From NCBI RefSeq assembly GCF_000142905.1, contig NW_013657623.1, positions 25,928-89,927 on the forward strand: a stretch of 64,000 nucleotides of DNA, written 5' to 3'. Made by a program: the position numbers and the translations under genes. Below the pieces are notes generated by a model, which did no database searches, had not been told where the DNA came from, and saw only the letters and a program-made list of their open reading frames with translations. The stretch comes from Thecamonas trahens ATCC 50062 (lineage: Eukaryota > Protista > Apusomonadida). This document shows, one piece after another, positions 3,049 through 48,922 of the stretch (position 1 is the stretch's first letter; each line of letters starts with the position of its first letter).

Positions 3049-3130
3049 CGTCAGCTAGAGGATTCGAACCTCTGCTCCCATCGGGAACTTGATTTCGAAT
3101 CAAGCGCCTTAACCGCTCGGCCAAACTGAC
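3049..3130 (-). tRNA. tRNA-Ser(CGA)
   Basis: 82-nt cloverleaf, anticodon arm CTTGA-TTCGAAA-TCAAG, long variable arm, GGTTCGAATCC T-arm, oligo-T terminator. Confidence 0.95.
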
Positions 3131-5981: not shown

Positions 5982-6063
5982 GTCAGTTTGGCCGAGCGGT
6001 TAAGGCGCTTGATTCGAAATCAAGTTCCCGATGGGAGCAGAGGTTCGAATCCTCTAGCTGACG
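5982..6063 (+). tRNA. tRNA-Ser(CGA)
   Basis: Identical inverted copy of 3049-3130, followed by a T-tract. Confidence 0.95.
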
Positions 6064-25400: not shown

Positions 25401-26725
25401 CAGTGCATCGGTGGTGTCAGAGGCCTGGACTGGCGTCAGGTTCTTGGCGACGTTGTCGCCGATGCGGACAGTGGTGAGCGCAAGCTCGAGCGCGTCTGGG
25501 CCGCCAGGAATGCCGAGCAGTTCTGCAGCCTTGACGAGCGGGGCCGGATCGACGACAGTCACGCGGGCAGTGTCGTCCTCGGGGTTGGGGCAAAGGTGAT
25601 TTGGCCGAGGTGAAGGACGGCTGCGATGACACCGAGCATGGCGTCGACAAAGTTGTCGCCAAAGCCGAGGGTGGCGAGGTGGGCAAGGAAGCTCTCGTAG
25701 CGACCAGCATCGTCAAGGGGTTCGCCAGCCTTGTCAAAGCCGTAAGAGGCTGCATTAGCGCCATCGGGCCCGATGAGATAGCGGTAGTCCGTGACAGTGG
25801 TGAGGCCAAGGGCAGCAAGGCGGGGCGGCGGGAGGGCGGCAAAGATCATGTAGAAGATGTGGTAGTTGCGTTCGCCAGGCTCCTGGGCAACGATGCGCGA
25901 CTTTTCGAGGAGGTACTGCTCAATGGCGGCGCCAACAATGGCGCCCGAGGTGGAGAATTGGATCTGGACAAACTTGCCAAACCGCGACGAGTTGTCATTG
26001 CGCGAGGTCTTGGCATTGCCAAAAGCTTCCAACACCTCTGAAGTGGCGAGGATCTTATCGTTGATGGAGGGAGATGAAAGTGATGAAGAAGAGGCACTGG
26101 CAGTGGCGACGGCAGCGAGGTAGTGGAGGACATGCTTGGTCGACTCGGACTTGCCTGCGCCTGACTCGCCTGAGACGACGATGGACTGGTTGGTGGCCGA
26201 GTCGAGCATGCGGGCGTAGGCCTCTGCACCGACAGCAAAGATGTGTGGGCTGAGCGGCGGGTCATGGGCGAGGCGCGAGCCCTTGTACATCTCGACATGC
26301 TGCGGCGAAATGAGGCCCTTGTCCTCGAGCGGGTTGATCACCACGAGCACGTCGCCGACATAAGTGTAGTACTCCATAGGCGAGGCCTTGTATCGCAGGC
26401 GGAGGTTGTGCATGAGCTCACCAACAGCAAGATCAGCCAAGTCGACCATGTTCTCCCGACCTTGAACATTCGATTCATCCATATGTTGCACATACGCCGC
26501 ATCGCCTGGGCGAATGACGACCTTTTGCGGAAGCACGGGCATCGCCGGCGCGCATGTCGGGCAAAGGTCACCCCATTGCGGAGCAAGTGTGAGCGAGCTC
26601 TCGTCAGAAGCAAGGACAATACCAGCTACTTTGGGTGGTGAAGGCGTAGGTGTAGGTGTGGGCGAGGGGTATGGGTAGTTGCACAGCCAGACTGCCGTCT
26701 TGGGAGGGTAGTCAGGGAAGGCCAT
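22462..26725 (-). CDS. Myosin with coiled-coil/helical tail and two C-terminal CAP-Gly domains (~1421 aa after repairing 2 frameshifts)
   Basis: GESGAGKS, LEAFGNAKT.RNDNSSRFGK, YLLEKSR, ERNYHIFY, LDIFGFE, FVRCVKPN, converter IGHSKILLK, IQ-like helix, CAP-Gly GKNDG; single-C deletions near 25587-25590 and 24386-24388. Confidence 0.85.
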
Positions 26726-26980
26726 GGACGGCGGGGCCCGAGGCAGAGGTTGGCGCCAAGTGGTGGCTAGTGAACGCGCAAAGGACGAACAACTTGAAAC
26801 ACGGAGGGAGTGGGGAGGAGGGGGGGGGCGGATGATCATGATCATGATTGGGGCGGGGGTGGGTGGGTGATCGGGAGGTTAGGGGAAGGGGGAAGGGGTA
26901 CGGTTGGGGCAAAGGGGTGGGAGGGGAGCCCTGGTCTCGGCTCTGGCGGTGGCTTGATCGGCGGGGGGGCGGGGGGGGGG

Positions 26981-27797
26981 NNNNNNNNNNNNNNNNNNNN
27001 NNNNNNNNNNNNNNNNNNNNNNNNNNNNNNNNNNNNNNNNNNNNNNNNNNNNNNNNNNNNNNNNNNNNNNNNNNNNNNNNNNNNNNNNNNNNNNNNNNNN
27101 NNNNNNNNNNNNNNNNNNNNNNNNNNNNNNNNNNNNNNNNNNNNNNNNNNNNNNNNNNNNNNNNNNNNNNNNNNNNNNNNNNNNNNNNNNNNNNNNNNNN
27201 NNNNNNNNNNNNNNNNNNNNNNNNNNNNNNNNNNNNNNNNNNNNNNNNNNNNNNNNNNNNNNNNNNNNNNNNNNNNNNNNNNNNNNNNNNNNNNNNNNNN
27301 NNNNNNNNNNNNNNNNNNNNNNNNNNNNNNNNNNNNNNNNNNNNNNNNNNNNNNNNNNNNNNNNNNNNNNNNNNNNNNNNNNNNNNNNNNNNNNNNNNNN
27401 NNNNNNNNNNNNNNNNNNNNNNNNNNNNNNNNNNNNNNNNNNNNNNNNNNNNNNNNNNNNNNNNNNNNNNNNNNNNNNNNNNNNNNNNNNNNNNNNNNNN
27501 NNNNNNNNNNNNNNNNNNNNNNNNNNNNNNNNNNNNNNNNNNNNNNNNNNNNNNNNNNNNNNNNNNNNNNNNNNNNNNNNNNNNNNNNNNNNNNNNNNNN
27601 NNNNNNNNNNNNNNNNNNNNNNNNNNNNNNNNNNNNNNNNNNNNNNNNNNNNNNNNNNNNNNNNNNNNNNNNNNNNNNNNNNNNNNNNNNNNNNNNNNNN
27701 NNNNNNNNNNNNNNNNNNNNNNNNNNNNNNNNNNNNNNNNNNNNNNNNNNNNNNNNNNNNNNNNNNNNNNNNNNNNNNNNNNNNNNNNNNNNNNNNN
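26981..27797. other. Assembly gap (N run)
   Basis: Ns flanked by poly-G. Confidence 0.99.
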
Positions 27798-28302
27798 GAG
27801 AGAGCGAGAGAGTGGAAGAGCGGGAGAGCGGGAGGGGGGGGGGGGGGGAGATGAGATGATGATCAAGTCGTTGTGATGGGCAAGTATGCGACATGGATGA
27901 TCAAGGCCATGATGAGGGTGATGAGAGTGAGTGCGAATGAATCAAGACTGATCAGAGACATAATCAGGTATGAGAAAGAGAACAAACGTGCTCAGAGTCT
28001 CTGATGATGGCTCATTCTTCCCATCCGAGGCAGTTTGAGTCGCGTGGTGAGAGGCGAGGGATTGTTGGTTGAGCGTTAACGATAAATGCAACGTTGGCAG
28101 CTGATAATGGCGGAAGTTGTGTCGATTGTTCGGTGATGACCGACAGACCGCCAGCCAGCCTGCCAGTCAGCCTGCCAGCCAACCAGCCAGCCAGCTGCAC
28201 ATACTGCACTCTGACCACATAGTTATTGGTGTGTGTGTTGGTGTGTGTGTGTGTGAGTGTGTGTACTTGGTGCCGTTGTGTGTATAGAAGAGCCTGCCGA
28301 AC

Positions 28303-39430: not shown

Positions 39431-40310
39431 AGGCAACGGCCAGACGTAGTGCTGTAGTGGTAGAAGGCAAGCAGTTGTGGTGGTGTGGAGGGGGGAGAAC
39501 CATAGTGGCGTGATCGGTAGCATGGAGGGAGCAGGCGGAGAGCGTGTCCGTGATTTGAGAGCTGGATACAAAGCCAACATACAGGGTGGAGCGACGGAGA
39601 AAGCTACTGATCGGAGACATCTGGTGTATGTTGAATACAACTATACACGTGCAGTGTGAGTACTCCTTGCCTTCCTGGTGCCTATTGGTCAAATACTTGA
39701 TGTCGATGCTGTTGTGCGTGGTTGATGGCAGCAAGACACATCAGTGATCAAGCATTTTCCTGTCGTTCTCGTCTCACGCTTTTAACATCACACATACACG
39801 GCACGCACAACAAAATGCCTTCCACACTCGTCAAGATGCTTGTTGTCATCTATACAACCCGTCCACGCTGTCCATCCATCTCCCAACTGTATCAATCGCT
39901 TGTGCTTCGCCTTTGAATGACTTTTTGTTATTTCATTATCGGGAGACTGCGACGAGTCCGCCACATCCACATAGCTCACGCGCAACATGGACACCTGTCT
40001 ACCGTCTTTACCGGCTAGACGTCAGGCATGCAGGCCTCTATCACTACTACAACTAATGTCTTGTGTCTGCCATCGCGATGCTTGCAGACACGGTCTGATC
40101 GCCTCGTTCCATCGCTAATCAGGGTGTTCCCACCACGGCTTTTCATCTACTACAGCCCAGCATCGATGTCTCGCTCTGTACTACACGCTGCAAGTCCTAT
40201 GCCCTTTCACAGCCACCGCATGCAGTTTCTAGGCGGGACGACGTTGAGACGCACTTGGGCAATGCAGTAAACACATCAAGTATGGTGGTCCGGCCGCTGC
40301 TGTCAGAAAT

Positions 40311-40383
40311 GGTCGGGTAGCTCAGTCGGTAGAGCGACAGTCTAATAAGCTGTCGGTCGCGGGTTCGAGCCCCGCTCTGACCA
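40311..40383 (+). tRNA. tRNA-Ile(AAT)
   Basis: 73-nt cloverleaf, anticodon loop CT-AAT-AA, GGTTCGAGCCC, T-tract. Confidence 0.95.
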
Positions 40384-40402
40384 TATTTTTCTACAACTGA
40401 TT

Positions 40403-40475
40403 GGTCGGGTAGCTCAGTCGGTAGAGCGACAGTCTAATAAGCTGTCGGTCGCGGGTTCGAGCCCCGCTCTGACCA
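40403..40475 (+). tRNA. tRNA-Ile(AAT), tandem copy
   Basis: Identical to 40311-40383, 19-nt spacer. Confidence 0.95.
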
Positions 40476-40794
40476 CATTTTTTTTGCCTTTGCCAACACC
40501 CTCCTCTTCTTCACGTCCCGATCTCATCCCTCACCACCCCATTGCTCTTCTTCATACCTCATCCCATACCCCCCCTCTCCTCTCCCCTTTGATCTTGCTC
40601 ACGGAACTCGAATCTGATTTGTCACCAAATGGCAAACTGACATGTGCCACGACAAGTTTGCTGAGAGTGAGGCACGTGACCGGACAATGGATGCAACAAC
40701 GGCAGAGACCTGAGCATGGCAGGCATAGCCACACGAGTCTTCATTTTCTCCACCTCTCTCTCTTCCATTCCTCCCCACCACACTTGACAGTAGC

Positions 40795-43700
40795 ATGCTG
40801 GGGTCGTCATCGGCGGCGAGTGGGTTACGAGCTAAGACTGGGTCGGCGAGCGGAGAGCGACCGAAGGTGCCGAGCCGGAAGAAGCAAGAGGTCCAGGGGA
40901 GCAAGAAGGGCGAGAAGGGCGAGAAGGGTGAGAAGGGCGACAAGGGGAGTCGCAGCAAGGATGTGCAAGGAGGGGGCAAGGAAGAGGTCTCAGGTGACCA
41001 TGTCATGGTTCATGTCTTTGCTCTCCTTCCCGGGGGACCTGGTGCTGGCTCGGGAGCTGCCGTCTCGGCTGGTGCATCGGGTCCGAGCAGGGAAAGGCCG
41101 AGCGGTGGTGGCGGTGGTGGCGATGGTGACTACACGGATCCATCGGCTTCGATGACAACCTTCCTCATGGACAGATCGACGCCGCTCCCGCTCTTTGGTG
41201 AACTTGTCGCCAACCACTTTTACCCCAGTCAGGTGCAGAGCTCAGGGCGCCGATCAGGCGGTGGTGCCGGCGCGGGACGAAGGAGCCCGACTGCGGTGGC
41301 GGTCTTCAAGTTTGACAAGGCCTCCGAATCCACTGAGCGGATTGAAATGACCGAAGACGAGGCAAGTCTTGGGTCGGTGGTGGGAAGGGAGAGCCAAGTC
41401 AACCTGATGGTGTGTGTCGAGCCGGTGCCGGTGTCGACCGAGCGGATGCTGCGGATCATGACCCAGATGCTGACGCCGACTGACGCCGTCCTCCACACCG
41501 TGCGGCGGCTCAAAGCCGATCCACAGAGTATTGAGGCGATCGACCGGCTGGCGTCTGTCTGGACGAGCCAGCAGGCCAGCTCGCCACTTGGCACATCGGA
41601 CGCGTCGGCGGTGCAGTCCTCGGCAACACCAATCATTTTCGGACTCATCCTTGCGTCGGGCAACACTGTGTGGAGCGAGGCCATGCGTGAAGAGCTGACC
41701 GGCAAGTCGGCGAGCCACGCGCTTGCTTGGCTTGTCCGGCTACTGCAGGACGACCAGTTCCAGGCTGCGTTCAACAAGCACATCAAGCCGCTCCACCTTC
41801 GCCACCTCCACATGCACTTGACGAGCGAAGTGGCAGACGTGCGCGATGTGGCGCTGCTGTTCATTGGCCAGCTCCAGCGGTTCTCGCCCAAGCTCCAGAA
41901 CTACACCCAGTACATCCCGCAGTTCTGCATCAAGGATGTCACCGAGTTCCTGCTCTCCTTCACCAAGGCACCCGAGAGCCGGTACCGGTTCTCGCCGGCG
42001 ACGGCTCGCCGCCTCGGTGCCCTCATCGACAACCACGAAGAGGCCATTCAGCTGCCACAGCTCGACGAGGCTCACATCGCAAGCGTGACAAACGGCTGCA
42101 TCCTCGTCGATCCGGTGACTGGCAAGATCACTACCGCTCACCTTAACCGACTCTTTACCGATGTCGCCGATCCCGACGACGACGACGCCGACGTCGGCGA
42201 ATCCGGCGACGGCACGGCCGCGGCCGCAGCGTCAGCCGGGCCCGAAAACTCGGCCACGGCGTCGACCACGCCCGCGTTTTCGTTTGCCGCAGCCAAGTCA
42301 GACGGGGTCGGCGCTGACGGGCAAGGTGCTGCTGCTGGCGACATGGGTTTGGGAGCTGCGGGAGCGACTGGGCCAGGGACCGGGACCGGAGACGGAGCTG
42401 GAACCGGGGCTGATGCTGGATTTGGGCCGGGGGCAGGAGGTGCGGCTGGGGGCGAAGGTGGCGCTGACGGCGAGGCAGGCGGAGGCGCAAGCAGCAGCGC
42501 ATCCACGACCAGCAGCACAATCGGCATGTCTGGCATGAGTGGTCCGAACGCGAGCGCAAACACGAGCGTAGCTGCCAGCGACGGGTCCAAGATCGAGGCC
42601 TACAACCAGACACTAGCCGGGAGTGGCACTGGTGTCGGAGCCGGGTCTGGAGCCGGAGCCGGAGGAGGAGCCGATGCCGAGGCATCCAACAGCGCAGCGG
42701 CTTCTGCAAGCACCAGCAGCACGGCCGGCGCAAGCGGCGCAAGCGGTGGTGAGGGCACCAAGGCCGAATCCCACCACCAATCCGGGGCCGAGCCGGTGCA
42801 GGGCGGAGACGAAGGCAAGGCGGAAATACCGTTGAGCGGCGCTGAAGGCGAGAGCGCGTTTGTGACTGCGGTGAGTGGGCGGGCGAGCGGCTCGGGCGGA
42901 CCACCGCACCCATGCGCCGAGGCACTGGCGGCGGTGCTGACTCGGCGAGAGCGACTGGAGGAGCGGCGGGCGGAGAAGGCTGCGCTGCTGGAGAAGCTGG
43001 AGAGCAAGAACAGTGAGATGGCCAGCCTCAAGTCTGCACTGCTGGCCAAGATTGCGTCGAGCAAGAGCGAGTCATCCAAGAAAAAGAACGAGGGCAAACT
43101 GGCCAAGCTTGGGCTCAAGATCAAGTCGCATGCGGCCAAGCTGAGCAAGGCACGAATGGCAATGGAGGAGATCGAGCTCGAGCTGCGGTCTGTGCACTGG
43201 CAGCGCGAGGGCACACTCATTGTCTCGCACCTGCACTCGCTCATCGACTCGGTGGCACGCGACGACGACGCGACAGACATCAAGGAGCAGCAGGATCGGT
43301 GGAAGTCGCAACTTCTTGACTTGTCGAGCGATGTGGTGACGGCGTCGACGTACGTAGGCATGGTCGGGCTGATGAAGGCCGGCAAGTCGTCGACGATTTC
43401 CGGGCTGGTGGGCTGCGACATTTGCCCATCTCGGGCGACGGCAATGACTGTCATTCCGACCATCATCACCCATGTCGAGGGCGTGCAGGTGCCACGGCTC
43501 TTCTTTCCGCCGGCGTGCGTGGAGGCACTGCGAGCTGCAGTCGCCGCCATCAAGTCACACCTCAGCTCACTCGACTCGCGGCTGGCAACGTCCAAGAAGG
43601 AGATGGACGACTTGCTCGAGCTCATCTACTCGAACGATAGCGCCATCCAGTTTAGTGTGGCGGCGATTTGTGGTGTTGAGGAGATCCAGAGCGCGCTGGT

Positions 43701-46700
43701 GGTGGCAAACGACGTGGTGCGGCTTGCCGAGTATCTGGGATTGGAGGGTGCGAATCCACTGGCGCGCATCATGGACCTTCACGATCTGCCGCACATCGAG
43801 GTCCAGTTTGCGGTCATGTCCGAGACGGGTATGTTTGGGCGGCTTTCGTTCATCGACTCGCCGGGTCCCAACGAGTTTGGCATGGCAGGGCTCGGCGAGG
43901 TGGTCCGGCGGACGCTGAAACAGGCGTCGATCATTGCGGTAGTGCTCAACTACGCGGCGCTGGCGGTGAAGCAGCAGGGGGAGATCAACGAGATGGTCCG
44001 CGAGGCGACTGCTGACCTCCAGCAGGAGGTTTATATGTTTGTCAACAAGTACGACCAGCGGAACACGGCGTCAGGCGACATGGACGAGGAGCAGCTCCGC
44101 GACTACATCCAGCGCAACATTGTGTTTGGCTCGGGCTCGTCGACCTTTGCGCGGGAGAACATTTTCCCGGTCTCGGCCAAGTACGCGCAGTTTGCCAACA
44201 CGGCGAGGCAGTACTTGTCGAACCCAGACGGGAGCGCTATCGGCGACGACGAAGTGTACGTGCCTGATCCGGACGAGATGGGGTGGGTGAAGGACTTTGC
44301 GCGGATTGCGTGGGGCGAGACATGGTCGCACGAAAAGGTGTACCCGTCGATGCTGGAGATCAACGACGTGGCACGGTTCCGGCAGGGAGTGGACGCGGTG
44401 TGGCGGAGCTCGCGGCTCAACGAGCCGCTTGAGTCGATGCTCCGGCACTGCTACACCAATGCCGGCGTCATCTCGCTGCAGCAGTCGCTCGCACGGTGCC
44501 AAGCCATTGCCGACTCGTTCAAGCTCGACCTCAACTACCAGATCGGGACCGTGACGGCGTCGGTCGCGCAGCTCGAGTCGTTCCTCATTGTCTCGGCCTC
44601 GGCGTACGACGACATTCGCAATGCTATTGTCGACATCAAAAAGTCAGCCGTGGAGCTGGCGCTCAAGCGGCTGCCGTGGCTCATTCTCGACGCCATCGAG
44701 AGCGCGTCGGACCACATTGTGGACAACCCGGCGAACATGCTGCGGCTGGTCAAGGAGGTCATTGCCACGCTCCGCGAGGGCCCGAGCGCTAAGGAGGGCC
44801 TCGTCACCCAGTTTACCGCCATCTTTACCGGCTCGGAGCCGCTCTCGTTCGCGTCGCAAGAAGAGGCCGAGGAGGTCATCGAGCATCTAACTGAGGTTTT
44901 CAAGAGCGCCGCGTCGCGGGTCCAAGCCGACATTATCAACAAGATCCTGACCAACACCAAGAAGATCAACTACAACATCGGCCAGATGGTCAAGGAGCGG
45001 CTCAAGCCGCATCTCCGCCAGTACGAGGACGATCTCGAGCGGGTCCTCGCCATGAACATCGAGTTCCCGGAGATCAACGCGCCGGACCTCGACGAGTTTG
45101 GCGAGGGCATCCAGGCCTCGACGCTCAAGCTTCTCGAGCAGCCGACAACCCGGGCGTGGGCCGTCAAGTGGCTGTTCAAGTTTATTCCGGTCCCGTGGCT
45201 CCGCAAGAACAAGGCTTCGACCTACGAAGTTGTCCCCGCTCGCATCCGCGAGGCCTTTGACCAGGGCATCCGGCGGGTCTTTGACTCGACGCTCGAGGCC
45301 TCCAAGCAGCTTTCGCACGTCCTCCAGAGGGTCGTCGATGAGTACGGCGGTCAGGTCGAGAACGAGCTCAACAAGCTCATCTCGCGCATCCGTCAGTCGA
45401 TCGAGAACAAGAAGTCGACCCATGACCGCTCCATCTTTGTCAAGCACCTGTGCGAGGAGCAGCTGTGGAAGCTCGAGGAGTACTACCGCCGGGCCCGCGA
45501 CCTCGCGGTTCTCCTTGAGGCGCACGGCGGGAGCGGCGAGAGCGAAGACGGCGCGAGCGAGTCGGCCTCAAGCGAGTCGTCCGCCGGAGGCGGGAGCTCT
45601 GCGAGCACAAGCGGAGCAAGCGGAAGCGAAGAGGAGGCCATCGAGTGGGGCAAGAACCCAACAACGCCACGGTTTAAGCGGTTCGGGTACAAAGTGAGCG
45701 TGCCCAAGGCGTCGATCCTCTACCCGCGCCAGCTCTCACGAGTGGTCATTGCCACGGACGTGGCCAAGCTCCGAGAGGCGTCGCGGGCCAGCGGGAGCGG
45801 GAGCGGGAGCGGCAACAGTGCAGGCTCTGTGGCCGGTGGCGGGCGCAAGGTCACGTTTGGCAAGAGCCGTGTCGGCGCGAGCGCGAGTAGCGGAGGTGCA
45901 GGCGCAAGCGGACAGTCGTCGTCGGCGGCTGCGCTCATCGAGTCCAAGTACGGCGGAGTGGGCGTGAAGAAGAAGACCTCGTACCTCGAGTTCAAGATCA
46001 AGTACGGGACGTTCACGGTTGGGCGTGAGCTTGGGCGCGGGGCGTTTGCCACGGTCTACGCTGGTGAGTACAACGGGCGGCGAGTGGCCATCAAGGACAT
46101 GCGGATCCGCAAGAACCGTGTGGACGAGGCCATCGGCGAGGTGGAGATCATGTGGAAGCTCTCGCACCCGAACCTCGTCGAGTTCCTCGGCTTTTCCTCG
46201 CACGGCTCGTCGTTCTTTATTCTTATGGAGCACATGCAGGGCGGCTCGCTCCGAGACTGGTTCAACGACCACGAGGGCGACGCGGGAGCCATGAGCTACG
46301 GCGACCGGGTTCTCCTCGTCGAGGACATCACTCTCGGACTCGAACACATGCACTCCAAGGGCGTTCTCCACCGCGACCTCAAGGCCGGGAACGTCCTCCT
46401 CGAGGAGAGCGAGGGCCGGCTCCGCGGCAAGCTCTCCGATTTTGGCACGTCCAAGTCGTCGCGGACGCCCGTGGCCTCGGTCTACCAGACCGTCAAGGGC
46501 ACGCCGGTCTACATGCCGCCGGAGCTTCTCTCGTCGTGGGCAAACAGGCGGAACAAGGCCCGATACTCGGCAACCATCGACATCTACGCCCTTGCCATGA
46601 TCATGTTTGAGCTATGGACAACCGCGCCGCTCATCGAGTCGGCCGACCAGTTCAACATCGACGAGATCCTCCGCGGCCGGCGGCCCGACTTTCCTCCTGG

Positions 46701-46829
46701 CTTCCCGCCGAGCACCCGCCGCTCCACGCACTTATCGTCGCGTGCTGGGCCAACGATGCCGGCTCGCGTCCAAGCGCCGGCGAGGTTGTCAAGCGGCTCA
46801 AGGTTGTCCGAGGTGAAATGGGATTGTGA
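40795..46829 (+). CDS. Giant protein: coiled coil, CrfC/YjdA-like bacterial dynamin-like GTPase and TKL-like protein kinase (~2011 aa; frameshift near 46704-46706)
   Basis: G1 GLMKAGKS, G3 DSPGPNE, G4 NKYD, IFPVSA; kinase GRGAFATV, VAIK, HRDLKAGN, DFG, YMPPE; subdomain XI (LIVACWANDAGSRPS) lies in the shifted frame ending TGA 46827-46829. Confidence 0.85.
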
Positions 46830-46960
46830 TGATATGTTGGTAAAGTGGAGAAAGAAGATGATGGGGAGGGACATAGAAGAGGAGCATGCATGGTGTGTGT
46901 GTGTGTGTGCACGTGTGAAAGAGATCGATCGAGGAGGGTTCAGGCCGAGGCAAAAAAATA

Positions 46961-47033
46961 TGGTCAGAGCGGGGCTCGAACCCGCGACCGACAGCTTATT
47001 AGACTGTCGCTCTACCGACTGAGCTACCCGACC
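46961..47033 (-). tRNA. tRNA-Ile(AAT), inverted copy
   Basis: Reverse complement identical to 40311-40383. Confidence 0.95.
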
Positions 47034-47359
47034 AATCTGAAGACTGCAGGGAGTTCACACTATTTATTACATTCATCACATTGCTACAGGTGAGCCTGCT
47101 GGCCTCAATACCTTGCACACAACAGAGTTGGGGGGGGGGGGCGTATCTCCCCGAAAGCCATGACTCCACCGGCATGGATAATAGTCTCCGTAGCCCGTAT
47201 GCAAGGTGAACAAGTGTCGCTGATTGGCTCGCCCCCCGTGCGGCAGGCGAGATGAAAGTAGCTCGATGGCGGCGAGGAGCACCTGATGCAAGACAGAGAT
47301 GACAGGCGTGCAAGGGGGGGGACTCACGCACCACCACTCTCTGTCTCCGAACCAGCGGC

Positions 47360-48922
47360 ATGGGTATGTCGGAATGGAGTGAGATGACAAGGCAGTGGTG
47401 GGAGAGTTGGACAGGAATCAGTGTGTGGCTCTTGTGGCTGGTTCTTGTTCCTGTCTTGGCTACTACCGTCTTGCCTATGGTCTGGTGGTGGCCATCACGT
47501 CGGTGGCTTCCAGGTTGGGCAGACCTTCCGCTCATCAATCTCATCATTGTCTTGGCCAACTTGTCACGATTGTATGAATGGATGACCGATTGCTCGCTCT
47601 CGTTTGGCTGGACGTGGACTGTGGTTCTTCCCATGCAACTGCGATTTGTTGGCATTACTCATCCAGATGATGTCAAGCATGTCCTTCGTGATAACTTTGA
47701 TAACTACGTCAAGGGCGAGACCTTTGGTGCTCTCGTCAATGAGCTCCTGGGTGGTGGCATCTTCAACTCGGATGGAAAGGCCTGGTATCGTCAGCGGAAA
47801 ATTGCATCGCATCTCTTTCATGTCCGCAACTTTAAGGAGACCATGGTCCCGGTCTTCCTTGCTCACGCCCGCAAGGTTGCCCGCTTGCTTGACGCTACAG
47901 CTGCTACTGGTCATCATGCAGTCATCGACATGCATGATGTCTTCTACCGGTACACTCTCGATTCTGCTGGCGTCATCGCCTTTTCCAAGGACATCGGCTC
48001 GCTCGAGAACCGTGATGTTCCGTTTGCGCGCGCCTTTGACTACCTCCAGTGGGGCTGCCTCATGCGCGGCTTCACCCCGCTCTGGTGGCTCTGGCGTGAC
48101 CTTGGCCTTTCGCCGATCGAGAATCGGATGCGGCGAGAGCTCGCTGTCCTTGATGACTACATCCGGACGGCGGTTCTCGATTCTGATGATCCGCCTGCGG
48201 ATGGACAGCAAGGCGCGTCGATCATTGAGCTGTTCAAGGCTTCGTCGCTCCGGCCGGACTCGCTGAGGCACGGGCCTGACGACGAGGCCGGGCGCGAGGA
48301 GGAGCTTCTCTTTCTGCGAGATCTTGTCGTCAACTTTATCATTGCCGGCCGAGACACGACCGGTGCTGCGCTCTCATGGCTCTTCTACCTCCTCGCCATG
48401 CATCCTCAGGTGCGGGACGAGGTTGTGGCCGAGATCGACGAGGTGCTCGATGGGGCCGACATGGCGTATGGCGACATACCGCGGCTGCCGCTCCTCCACG
48501 CCGCGGTCAAGGAGACGCTGCGGCTGTATCCTTCGGTCCCGCGCGACCTCAAGGTCTCGGTCTCGGCCGACGTCCTACCGGGCTCGGGTGCGGCAGTGGC
48601 GCCGGGCGTGTGGATCGTGTACATGCCGTACGTCATGGGCCGGCTGCCGGCGCTGTGGGGGCCGGACGCAGCGAGCTTTCGGCCACAGAGGTGGCTCGAA
48701 CCGGATTTCGAGCCGCCGTCGGCGTACAAGTTCATTGCCTTTAACGCCGGGAAGCGGTCGTGCCTCGGCGAGCGCATGGCGTACCAGGAGATTATGGCGT
48801 GCAGTGTCCACTTGCTCCAGCGGTTTGTGCTGGACGTTGCCCCGGGCGCCGACGTCCGACCGGCGACCCAAATCACGCTCGCCATGGCCAACGGACTTCC
48901 GATGAACGTGCGCGAGCGATAA
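47360..48922 (+). CDS. Cytochrome P450, CYP86/94/704 clan-like
   Basis: NFDNYVKG, LLGGGIFNSDG..W..QRK, AGRDTT, ETLR, PQRW, FNAGKRSCLG. Confidence 0.92.
   Translation: MGMSEWSEMTRQWWESWTGISVWLLWLVLVPVLATTVLPMVWWWPSRRWLPGWADLPLINLIIVLANLSRLYEWMTDCSLSFGWTWTVVLPMQLRFVGITHPDDVKHVLRDNFDNYVKGETFGALVNELLGGGIFNSDGKAWYRQRKIASHLFHVRNFKETMVPVFLAHARKVARLLDATAATGHHAVIDMHDVFYRYTLDSAGVIAFSKDIGSLENRDVPFARAFDYLQWGCLMRGFTPLWWLWRDLGLSPIENRMRRELAVLDDYIRTAVLDSDDPPADGQQGASIIELFKASSLRPDSLRHGPDDEAGREEELLFLRDLVVNFIIAGRDTTGAALSWLFYLLAMHPQVRDEVVAEIDEVLDGADMAYGDIPRLPLLHAAVKETLRLYPSVPRDLKVSVSADVLPGSGAAVAPGVWIVYMPYVMGRLPALWGPDAASFRPQRWLEPDFEPPSAYKFIAFNAGKRSCLGERMAYQEIMACSVHLLQRFVLDVAPGADVRPATQITLAMANGLPMNVRER

Follow-up and report, generated by a model that had tools for sequence, protein, structure and literature searches.

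A CrfC/RdcA-type dynamin-like GTPase joined in one reading frame to a putative TKL-like kinase in Thecamonas trahens

The window analysed here is a stretch of 64,000 nucleotides from the genome of Thecamonas trahens, a little-studied marine protist. It carries an intron-free GTPase-kinase gene which, after the correction of one base, reads as a single frame of about 2,011 codons (Table 1). The original prediction held that one frame joins a coiled coil, a dynamin-like G domain, a helical stalk and a kinase, and that no intron is needed to read it. Both statements were borne out, the first by the open reading frame, the Pfam matches and the motifs. The gene lies between tRNA-Ile genes, the nearest of them about 130 nt beyond the corrected stop, and its adjacent protein-coding genes are an ordinary eukaryotic P450 and a kinesin. 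We are highly confident of the gene, of its architecture and of the assignment of its GTPase to the CrfC/RdcA-type family.

In the assembly, the frame is open throughout positions 40795-47022 (+ strand, 2075 codons), and the kinase falls out of frame after 46703, where one C is absent. Contigs from two independent runs, X2 (an RNA library) and X4, each carry one extra C at this point. The gene end was set at 46829 because adding this base recovers kinase subdomain XI together with a stop codon at 46827-46829. The last 64 codons of the listed frame, which cross the minus-strand tRNA-Ile gene, are therefore non-coding. The kinase had been predicted to be intact; this is right for all of its catalytic motifs, but subdomain XI is recovered only with the one-base correction. 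If the absence of this C is genuine in the reference strain, the kinase of that strain is without its last helix. Other runs differ from the window at eight nucleotides, in every case synonymously, and X4 shows a linker length variant of 6 bases, in frame, behind 45789.

Table 1. Positions of the gene, its parts and the neighbouring tRNA genes within the window
Feature	Position	Strand	Basis or remark
Two tandem tRNA-Ile(AAU) genes, upstream neighbours	40310-40384, 40403-40476	+	Outside the gene
Corrected coding sequence	40795-46829	+	ORF listing; extra C in X2 and X4 contigs; corrected end
N-terminal module, aa 70-470: possible UBL-like beta-grasp, then ARM-like helices	41002-42204	+	BLASTP against paralogues; low-confidence model
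Gly/Ala/Ser-rich low-complexity spacer, aa ~471-700	42205-42894	+	Composition map; translation
Coiled-coil/helical lead-in to the GTPase, aa ~705-848	42907-43338	+	Translation; model helix 2-23
Dynamin-like G domain, aa ~849-1145	43339-44229	+	Pfam, NCBIfam, RdcA alignment, motifs
Helical stalk/trunk, aa ~1146-1578	44230-45528	+	Model; collinearity with bacterial homologues; interface residues
Trp/Phe/Lys-rich stalk tip, aa 1455-1471, candidate membrane-contact 'paddle'	45157-45207	+	Model loop 625-648
Ser/Gly-rich disordered linker, stalk to kinase	45529-45996	+	Model residues 754-877 with pLDDT <50; X4 indel
Putative TKL-type Ser/Thr kinase domain	45997-46829	+	Pfam, motifs; subdomain XI in shifted frame from 46704
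One-base frame break of the assembly	46703-46704	+	Window reads CCC, other runs read CCCC
Third identical tRNA-Ile(AAU) gene	46960-47034	-	Neighbour

The N-terminal module matches the region that follows the DUSP domain in paralogous proteins of the same genome (aa 117-441; BLASTP E values of 1e-20 to 1e-26). The DUSP domain itself is absent from this copy, and a search for a DUSP-like exon upstream, including beyond the tRNA genes, did not find one. The structural model of the module has a pLDDT of 57 and yields weak matches to ELMO/FHOD1-type folds, none of which reaches an E value of 0.001. Leads to UBL and ARM folds came from the atlas, and the UBL plus ARM-like identity is offered as a lead only. 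In the predicted model, the last helix of the coiled-coil lead-in packs against the stalk bundle.

The G domain is recognised by Pfam (Dynamin_N, aa 855-1084, 33.4 bits against a cut-off of 27) and contains all four nucleotide-binding motifs. G1 (GLMKAGKS, 43366-43389) includes K864, the equivalent of K82 of E. coli RdcA, and Thr885 of G2, inside 43444-43473, is the equivalent of RdcA T103. G3 (DSPGPNE) occupies 43855-43875 and G4 (NKYD) 44044-44055. The originally predicted positions of G1, G3 and G4 proved exact, and the flanking motifs MTVIPTIITH, IFPVSA, WVKDFA, GETW, VWRSS and YTNA were located in the translation.

The stalk region is modelled with a pLDDT of 80 and a pTM of 0.76, and it holds two family motifs, WVKDFA...GETW (44284-44325) and VWRSS (44398-44412). 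Its tip is a low-confidence loop between two helices of about 60 residues. The tip is conserved in the paralogues and may contact a membrane; no transmembrane segment was found in the protein.

The kinase domain (Pfam Pkinase, aa 1740-1952, E 5e-43, 147.8 bits against a cut-off of 31.7) carries the Gly-loop (GRGAFATV, 46033-46056), the VAIK Lys (46084-46095), the alphaC Glu, the HRD Asp (D1861, within HRDLKAGN, 46369-46392), DFG (46438-46446) and an APE-like motif. Judging from these residues, it is apparently a working, catalytically competent enzyme. The closest solved kinases are LYK3, IRAK4, CERK1, B-Raf and CTR1, and in T. trahens itself the closest one is an LRR-kinase (41% identity). 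The nearest solved matches and the NCBI name of a paralogue point to a TKL-like kinase, and its in-frame fusion to the GTPase, also foreseen in the original prediction, agrees with the Pfam matches, the nearest matches and the motifs.

RNA-library contigs are distributed along the gene; such libraries can contain DNA. An RNA check of the stalk-kinase junction had been proposed, and it gave no contig bridging the two parts: positions 45806-46041 are covered solely by a run of unknown kind. From its composition we estimate that the linker, 155 codons long, would have about a 1% chance of staying open at 63% GC. From the open frame, the paralogues and the orthologues, we infer that one transcript runs across the junction.

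The original prediction also placed the gene in a block bounded by tRNA-Ile genes. What lies there is three ordinary tRNA genes with the anticodon AAU, which is the eukaryotic type of tRNA-Ile. We rejected the idea that they bracket a mobile or transferred block, because the repeat is confined to the tRNA genes and does not extend past them, their anticodon is eukaryotic and the GC content of the gene fits its surroundings. Moreover, there is no such bracket at the loci of the sister genes.

The same observations bear on whether the locus is an artefact or a dead gene, be it through a chimera in the assembly, contamination with bacterial DNA, the merging of two neighbouring genes or a frameshift that left a pseudogene. 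The frame break at 46703, a tail of the uncorrected frame that enters a tRNA gene, and a junction spanned by no RNA contig are what one would expect of such a locus. However, the layout is repeated at three other genomic loci and on independent marine contigs, the neighbouring genes and tRNAs are eukaryotic, the GC content is that of the surroundings, the differences between runs are all synonymous and the extra C appears in two other data sets. This reading is very improbable, and we regard it as already largely refuted.

T. trahens has four copies of the gene, three of which have orthologues in marine metagenomes. The sister copies are XP_013762825.1 ('TKL protein kinase'), AMSG_10125 ('DUSP domain-containing protein') and a third on contig 2. 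They share with this copy the GTPase (33-51% identity), the post-DUSP N-terminal module and the overall order of parts, but they have the DUSP domain that is absent here. Paralogues and contigs from Tara Oceans show the same layout, each within a single open reading frame, and on one of the contigs a eukaryotic Elp4 gene lies next to it. Two sister copies are pseudokinases, without the HRD Asp and without DFG, and one has no kinase. The catalytic kinase motifs are missing in paralogues B and C and in their orthologues, and among the four T. trahens copies only the one described here retains them.

Several lines of evidence assign the GTPase to the family of bacterial CrfC/RdcA proteins. The NCBIfam model CrfC (NF007368) matches with an E value of 1.4e-53 over model positions 48-498 of 742, and paralogue B matches positions 346-709 of the same model. 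The score of 182 bits falls far short of the equivalog cut-off of 1146 bits, below which non-enterobacterial bacterial members also fall (242-838 bits). In a BLASTP alignment with E. coli RdcA (= CrfC = YjdA), the identity is 30% across 411 residues (E 3e-51). The motifs of the family in its broad sense are all present (MT.[LI]PT..I.H, D.PGPNE, WV.DF...G..W, W..S...PL, G1-G4 and the K82/T103 equivalents), and their columns are invariant in alignments of 31 and 101 sequences. The protein is collinear with bacterial proteins of about 800 aa over query residues 5-741, the C-terminal half included.

Wider searches agree with this assignment. Among 1.84 billion representatives, only CrfC-like proteins of about 800 aa were found beyond the protist group. 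The nearest named genomes for the GTPase are all bacterial and belong to many phyla, and the closest clusters in the ESM atlas are named RdcA and consist of 98-100% Bacteria. A word-index homologue search with the GTPase part returned 4 matches and added nothing. Metagenome contigs profiled with the protist alignment gave generic kinase matches only, among the matches listed.

In quick trees computed under LG+G4 and LG+C20, which were mutually consistent, the protist sequences fall together in a single clade (support 100), which joins one of the bacterial subgroups (support of the split 99-100). The CrfC/RdcA family as a whole stands apart from the protist's own dynamins (support 98). NCBIfam, BLASTP, the trees and the atlas thus agree that the GTPase is of the CrfC/YjdA type rather than an ordinary eukaryotic dynamin, Mx or mitofusin. 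None of the observations named beforehand as refuting the original prediction was made: neither a G domain nesting among ordinary eukaryotic dynamin-like families, nor, in the literature searched, an earlier description of the architecture, nor separate transcripts for GTPase and kinase.

The predicted lateral acquisition of the GTPase fits the distribution of the family, which is widespread among bacteria and restricted among eukaryotes, but the outgroup-rooted tree gives it no direction. Rooting with the protist's own dynamin, EHD-like proteins and related G domains left the basal branching of the family as a polytomy and drew a long-branch warning, so that the direction of transfer is read solely from the distribution. 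Most simply, the GTPase would have come by an old transfer from a bacterium to the Thecamonas lineage.

E. coli RdcA, the relative that can best be compared, is soluble, has no transmembrane segment, self-associates and controls a signalling enzyme, DgcE. It has been described as a switch that responds to GTP and activates DgcE through its C-terminal half (PMC6510439, PMC13463826), and the roles of its residues K82 and T103 have been described (PMC6510439). The T. trahens protein has in common with it G1-G4, the equivalents of both residues and, beyond the G domain, the family motifs, while collinearity with the bacterial family extends over about 740 residues. The differences are considerable as well. 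The output is a eukaryotic Ser/Thr kinase in cis and not a diguanylate cyclase, the N-terminal additions are long and eukaryotic, and the host is a eukaryote. E. coli CrfC binds the beta-clamp through an N-terminal motif, 41-QLALP (PMC6374313); QLALP is absent from the T. trahens protein, in which the pattern Q[LIVM][SAD][LIVM][PFLW] occurs nowhere. Bacterial loci of the family do contain an RdcB gene, but no RdcB/YjcZ (PF13990) gene was found in the whole T. trahens genome by a search that could miss a very divergent partner (best match of E. coli RdcB, E 0.04). Regulation may therefore differ from that of E. coli RdcA.

In fold, the protein is dynamin-like, of the BDLP/SynDLP/mitofusin type (Foldseek 2j69, E 1.4e-13). 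The VIA fold comparison gave mitofusin-1 with Z 21.8 (rmsd 6.5, 335 aligned) and 7zw6 with Z 21.3, and a PDB sequence search found no relative of the GTPase part. As in BDLP, SynDLP, IniA and mitofusin, folded-back helical bundles come after the G domain, and two G domains are predicted to pair. Unlike those proteins, with which it shares 11-15% of sequence identity, the T. trahens protein has no known paddle or transmembrane anchor, and none of them has a kinase.

This likeness could mean that the protein is a membrane-remodelling machine, whose dynamin-like part tethers, fuses or repairs membranes in the manner of BDLP, DynA and mitofusin, and whose kinase only tunes it by phosphorylating itself or its neighbours, as an input rather than an output. 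Besides the fold, the modelled aromatic/basic tip at the position of BDLP's paddle is consistent with such a role. So are the paralogues: two have kept the GTPase while their kinase decayed, evidence that GTPase function does not depend on kinase catalysis, and a third lacks the kinase domain altogether. On the other hand, E. coli CrfC/RdcA has been described as a switch and not a remodeller, without a typical membrane-binding motif, a transmembrane segment is absent, and the kinase motifs are fully kept in this copy. We consider this explanation quite unlikely.

The closest matches of the kinase, IRAK4 and the plant LysM/chitin receptor kinases, suggest another role, that of an immune or damage sensor, which the original prediction had raised as a possibility. 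The dynamin-like part, behaving as Mx or GBP do, would detect an invader or a damaged membrane and the IRAK/receptor-kinase-like domain would start the defence, with the pseudokinase paralogues as partners or decoys. A family of four diverged paralogues in which two kinases have decayed would suit such a system, as would a stalk tip that looks membrane-active in the model. In bacteria, relatives occur in the same operon as a patatin-like phospholipase, and effectors of this type serve in bacterial defence as well. However, TKL kinases in general resemble IRAK and receptor-like kinases, and the only relative studied, RdcA, is a metabolic GTP sensor. Furthermore, PADLOC defence models match neither the GTPase nor the bacterial DLP and YjcZ proteins; no PADLOC family, including the anti-phage dynamin Eleos (LeoA/LeoBC), matches the GTPase, and the kinase matches generic kinase models only. 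A role as immune sensor therefore appears unlikely.

How GTPase and kinase might work together was approached by structure prediction. A homodimer of aa 845-1245, predicted from our own alignment, reached an ipSAE of 0.53, where the best of 3 controls gave 0.00; the value may echo solved dynamin G-domain dimers that the model has memorised. Of 30 proteins solved as same-chain pairs, 20 reached the mark, as did 1 of 23 solved as single chains. Between the in silico runs at least 81% of contacts agree, and the partner pLDDT is at least 72. The predicted contact lies on the nucleotide face and is formed also by the two family motifs of the stalk (aa 1164-1177 and 1202-1206).

Taken as a whole, the best explanation, and in our view a probable one, is that of a transferred GTPase which was joined to a kinase and acts as a nucleotide-controlled switch. 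The central ~750 residues are a complete CrfC/RdcA (YjdA) GTPase, which would stem from an old bacterial transfer. It would have been joined to eukaryotic modules, with the UBL-like/helical part upstream (plus DUSP in the sister genes) and, downstream, a kinase derived from the host's own LRR-TKL kinases. The joined gene would then have been duplicated to give four copies, this one alone with a competent kinase.

TKL kinases such as RAF, IRAK4 and receptor-like kinases are activated by dimerisation. In the proposed mechanism, the GTPase would serve as both a nucleotide-controlled switch and an assembly platform, and its GTP state would govern pairing, with the contact made by the nucleotide-binding side of each G domain. 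The site may be a membrane, which the aromatic/basic tip of the stalk would touch. Pairing would bring two C-terminal kinase domains close to each other and allow their trans-autophosphorylation and activation. The logic would be shared with the control of DgcE by E. coli RdcA, but the output enzyme would be fused and would be a kinase. That nucleotide-controlled pairing of the GTPase drives the kinase is a possibility which we put forward tentatively.

In favour of this mechanism, bacterial members of the family also have output or sensor partners, namely a C-terminal FHA domain, an N-terminal TerB or TerD domain, or a patatin gene in the operon. One might speculate, though we find it rather doubtful, that CrfC/RdcA-type GTPases are a general plug-in switch that passes the guanine-nucleotide (or membrane) state to whichever effector is attached, and that the active copy may form a heteromer with its pseudokinase sisters. 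Parallels for such heteromers are RAF with KSR and the paired bacterial dynamin-like proteins. In E. coli the effector would be a diguanylate cyclase, whereas most other bacteria would use a patatin-like phospholipase and some of them FHA or TerB/TerD modules; in the eukaryote it would be a TKL kinase.

The original prediction compared the architecture with ROCO/LRRK proteins. The comparison stands as an analogy: as in LRRK2, a dimerising GTPase and a TKL-group kinase would share one polypeptide, and the nearest T. trahens kinase is an LRR-kinase. It does not extend to the domains themselves, since ROCO proteins have a Ras-like Roc and a COR, whereas a large dynamin-superfamily GTPase with a helical stalk is found here, and Pfam gave no match to Roc or COR at E values up to 0.1. 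With an independent origin, the likeness is one of analogy and not of membership.

Dynamin-superfamily proteins are known as membrane machines, and E. coli RdcA has reportedly been shown only recently to be a GTP-sensing signalling switch. A fusion of a CrfC/RdcA-type GTPase with a eukaryotic protein kinase was not found in the literature searched. In T. trahens, a eukaryote holds a bacterial-type GTPase which is under purifying selection and fused directly to a kinase whose catalytic motifs are intact. This is a clear case of an apparently transferred bacterial gene rebuilt with eukaryotic DUSP, UBL-like and TKL kinase domains, and would be a second, independent design of a GTPase-kinase signalling protein beside ROCO/LRRK. 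The four copies offer a natural series for the study of GTPase-kinase crosstalk, ranging from an apparently active kinase through two pseudokinases to a copy with no kinase. If the plug-in switch were true, the gene would represent a new way for a eukaryote to link its GTP level, or the state of a membrane, to the phosphorylation of proteins.

An open frame of 2075 codons was read in the window at 40795–47022 on the plus strand, and when the motif coordinates of the original prediction were checked on the window sequence, every one proved exact. In this uncorrected frame, the kinase profile match ends at position 202 of 263, and the tail of the ORF reads through a minus-strand tRNA. When public contigs were compared with window positions 41700–47600 (5,901 letters), one contig from run X2, an RNA library, showed an extra C behind 46703 and otherwise no difference from the window. 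The same C was observed in a contig of run X4, another public sequencing run, and the site is a CCC run in the window. With this base the frame runs on through a textbook subdomain XI of the kinase to a stop at 46827–46829, about 130 nt upstream of the tRNA. Because both the subdomain and the stop are thereby restored, we take the gene to span 40795–46829 (about 2,011 codons). The C missing after 46703 is likely an assembly error, with a small probability left that the reference strain has a genuine frameshift.

Features of the gene and its flanks (nucleotide coordinates refer to the window, aa to the encoded protein)
Feature	Position	Strand	Source
Two tandem tRNA-Ile(AAU), just upstream of the gene	40310–40476	+	ARAGORN
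CrfC (clamp-binding protein) model match	aa 826–1315		NCBIfam, E 1.4e-53
Dynamin_N	aa 855–1084		Pfam
Protein kinase domain	aa 1740–1952		Pfam, E 5e-43
tRNA-Ile(AAU)	46960–47034	-	ARAGORN

That the joining of GTPase and kinase is an artefact appears hardly credible. The disordered Ser/Gly linker between stalk and kinase is open throughout its approximately 155 codons, and from composition we estimate the chance of this at 63% GC at about 1%. The same order of parts recurs at three further loci of the T. trahens genome, and metagenome contigs from Tara Oceans show it within unbroken ORFs; on one of these contigs a eukaryotic Elp4 (PAXNEB) gene adjoins the ORF. Contigs from other runs show eight nucleotide differences from the window, 8/8 of them synonymous and at third codon positions, and the sole length difference in the linker is 6 bases. 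Contigs of three metatranscriptome libraries from one study are distributed along the gene, starting in its N-terminal region and reaching as far as the kinase, although none of the RNA-library contigs bridges 45806–46041 and RNA libraries can contain DNA. The whole gene is probably carried by a single transcript.

The libraries in question, X1–X3, are labelled 'subsurface metagenome', an unexpected habitat record for a species known as a marine flagellate; over 41700–46813 their contigs are 95–100% identical to T. trahens, most of them at least 99%. In run X4, the linker holds an in-frame 6-base insertion behind 45789, and one additional A stands behind 46951, immediately ahead of the minus-strand tRNA-Ile. 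Both may reflect variation between strains or alleles, or else more assembly errors.

The gene has a cytochrome P450 gene and a kinesin gene as neighbors, and its region is even in GC content; the locus is therefore host DNA and not contamination. The three tRNA-Ile(AAU) genes are identical, and an inverted repeat ends with them. A second inverted pair in the window, both tRNA-Ser(CGA) (3049–3130, minus; 5982–6063, plus), brackets another gene, and directly upstream of the start of paralogue B, one of three sister genes, lie two tandem tRNA-Leu(CAG) genes (locus L123, 9510–9770). Flanking of genes by tRNA pairs seems to be a habit of this genome. Apart from the 2-kb stretch at 26001–28000, which has only 35% GC and long ORFs on both strands (26712–27894), the GC content of the window is 53–70%.

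BLASTP aligned the GTPase with E. coli RdcA (b4109, formerly YjdA or CrfC) over 411 residues at 30% identity (E 3e-51). The family motifs that the original prediction had named as CrfC/YjdA-like are conserved in this alignment, as are the P-loop lysine (K82 in RdcA, K864 here) and the catalytic threonine (T103 and T885), whose roles in RdcA have been described (PMC6510439). A HMMER search of 1.84 billion representatives yielded 774 relatives, headed by six protist-type proteins, after which the list drops sharply to proteins of about 800 aa; each of the latter that was tested matches the CrfC model along its entire length. A collection of species-representative genomes contains 364 stretches that encode relatives; those with the best matches belong to Pseudomonadota, Bacillota, Cyanobacteriota, Kiritimatiellota, Spirochaetota, and Hydrogenedentota. 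The nearest ESM atlas clusters are named RdcA and are 98–100% bacterial. The predicted structure (pLDDT 80, pTM 0.76; residues 1–753 of the model confident) best matches Nostoc BDLP, SynDLP, IniA, and mitofusin/Fzo1; no sequence-level relative was found among solved structures. The T. trahens protein does not qualify as a CrfC equivalog, since it scores 182 bits against the cut-off of 1146 and lacks the beta-clamp motif, and no RdcB/YjcZ was detectable in the genome.

Trees of 52 sequences, eight of them protist, were built under LG+G4 and LG+C20. Both models unite the protist sequences in a single long-stemmed clade (support 100), which attaches to a bacterial subgroup with a Hydrogenedentota genome among its members (split support 99–100). 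Within the clade, three T. trahens paralogues each pair with one marine metagenome sequence, so the four-fold duplication predates those species splits; unlike them, the present copy has no orthologue that we could find. With the dynamin-superfamily G domains of T. trahens itself as outgroup, the CrfC-like family, protist clade included, holds together (98), but this tree fixes no root within the family and carries a long-branch warning. Judged by the distribution of the family, a probable transfer from bacteria to the Thecamonas lineage is the most economical reading.

The kinase has a Gly-loop, VAIK, the alphaC Glu, HRDLKAGN, DFG, and an APE-like motif; its nearest solved structures are LYK3, IRAK4, CERK1, B-Raf, and CTR1. 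Within the same genome, by far its closest relative is an LRR-kinase (L133 4319–6889; G000:C15:480318–482888; 41% identity), whose E of 2e-48 leaves the next hits (about 1e-26) and more than 150 other kinases well behind; the domain therefore comes from the host. Neither the HRD Asp nor DFG survives in paralogues B and C or in their marine orthologues, so all of these are pseudokinases, and paralogue D has no kinase. To judge from sequence, the present copy alone among the paralogues has an intact kinase, which is a new point. The paralogues begin with a DUSP domain that the present copy lacks; the region behind it is common to all, and modeling tentatively suggests a UBL-type beta-grasp followed by ARM-like helices. 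Two paralogues match XP_013762825.1 and AMSG_10125 of T. trahens ATCC 50062 exactly, in agreement with that strain as the source. Paralogue C (DUSP, GTPase, pseudokinase) lies in two overlapping frames (L121 2727–8213 and 8057–9628; G000:C2:521726–528627); the split between stalk and kinase-like domain is due to a frame break or, alternatively, a short intron.

E. coli RdcA is described as a soluble switch that responds to GTP: GTP holds it in the off state, falling GTP lets it reach the membrane, and its C-terminal half then binds DgcE, a diguanylate cyclase, and activates it, probably by promoting dimerisation (PMC6510439, PMC13463826). Other bacterial CrfC-like GTPases carry a C-terminal FHA (phospho-threonine binding) or an N-terminal TerB or TerD module (proteins P0081, P0091, P0018, P0067, P0073, P0046, P0134). 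Outside Enterobacteriaceae, the dynamin-like protein forms an operon with a YjcZ/RdcB-like protein and a patatin-like phospholipase in 11/11 loci examined, from at least six phyla (L041, L064, L134, L135, L136, L044, L050, L042, L049, L043, L054), whereas E. coli rdcAB lacks the patatin gene. The literature searched yielded no description of this operon, of CrfC-type proteins in eukaryotes, or of a fusion between a dynamin-like GTPase and a kinase. A survey of eukaryotic dynamin-related proteins explicitly excluded bacterial-type ones (PMC10280142), and public databases name the T. trahens family proteins only automatically. PADLOC defence models match neither the bacterial dynamin-like and YjcZ proteins nor the T. 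trahens GTPase, and a role of the latter protein as an immune or damage sensor seems unlikely.

Homodimer prediction for aa 845–1245 gave an ipSAE of 0.53, a value that may echo solved dynamin dimers learned by the model, whereas the best of three controls scored 0.00; the ipSAE mark was reached by 20/30 proteins whose solved structures are pairs of one chain and by 1/23 solved as single chains. Contacts agree between runs by at least 81% (partner pLDDT at least 72) and lie on the nucleotide face, beside the P-loop, G4, and SAK motif, as well as on the family motifs WVKDFA..GETW and VWRSS. In the predicted structure, the Trp-, Phe-, and Lys-rich stalk tip (aa 1455–1471) occupies the place of the BDLP membrane paddle; no transmembrane segment was found in the protein. 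We regard a membrane remodeller with a regulatory kinase as quite improbable. From the RdcA switch, the modules and operons of bacterial relatives, the homodimer prediction, and the stalk tip, we infer a mechanism based on GTPase pairing. The GTPase would pair in a nucleotide-dependent manner, perhaps at a membrane, and such pairing would bring the kinase domains together for trans-activation.
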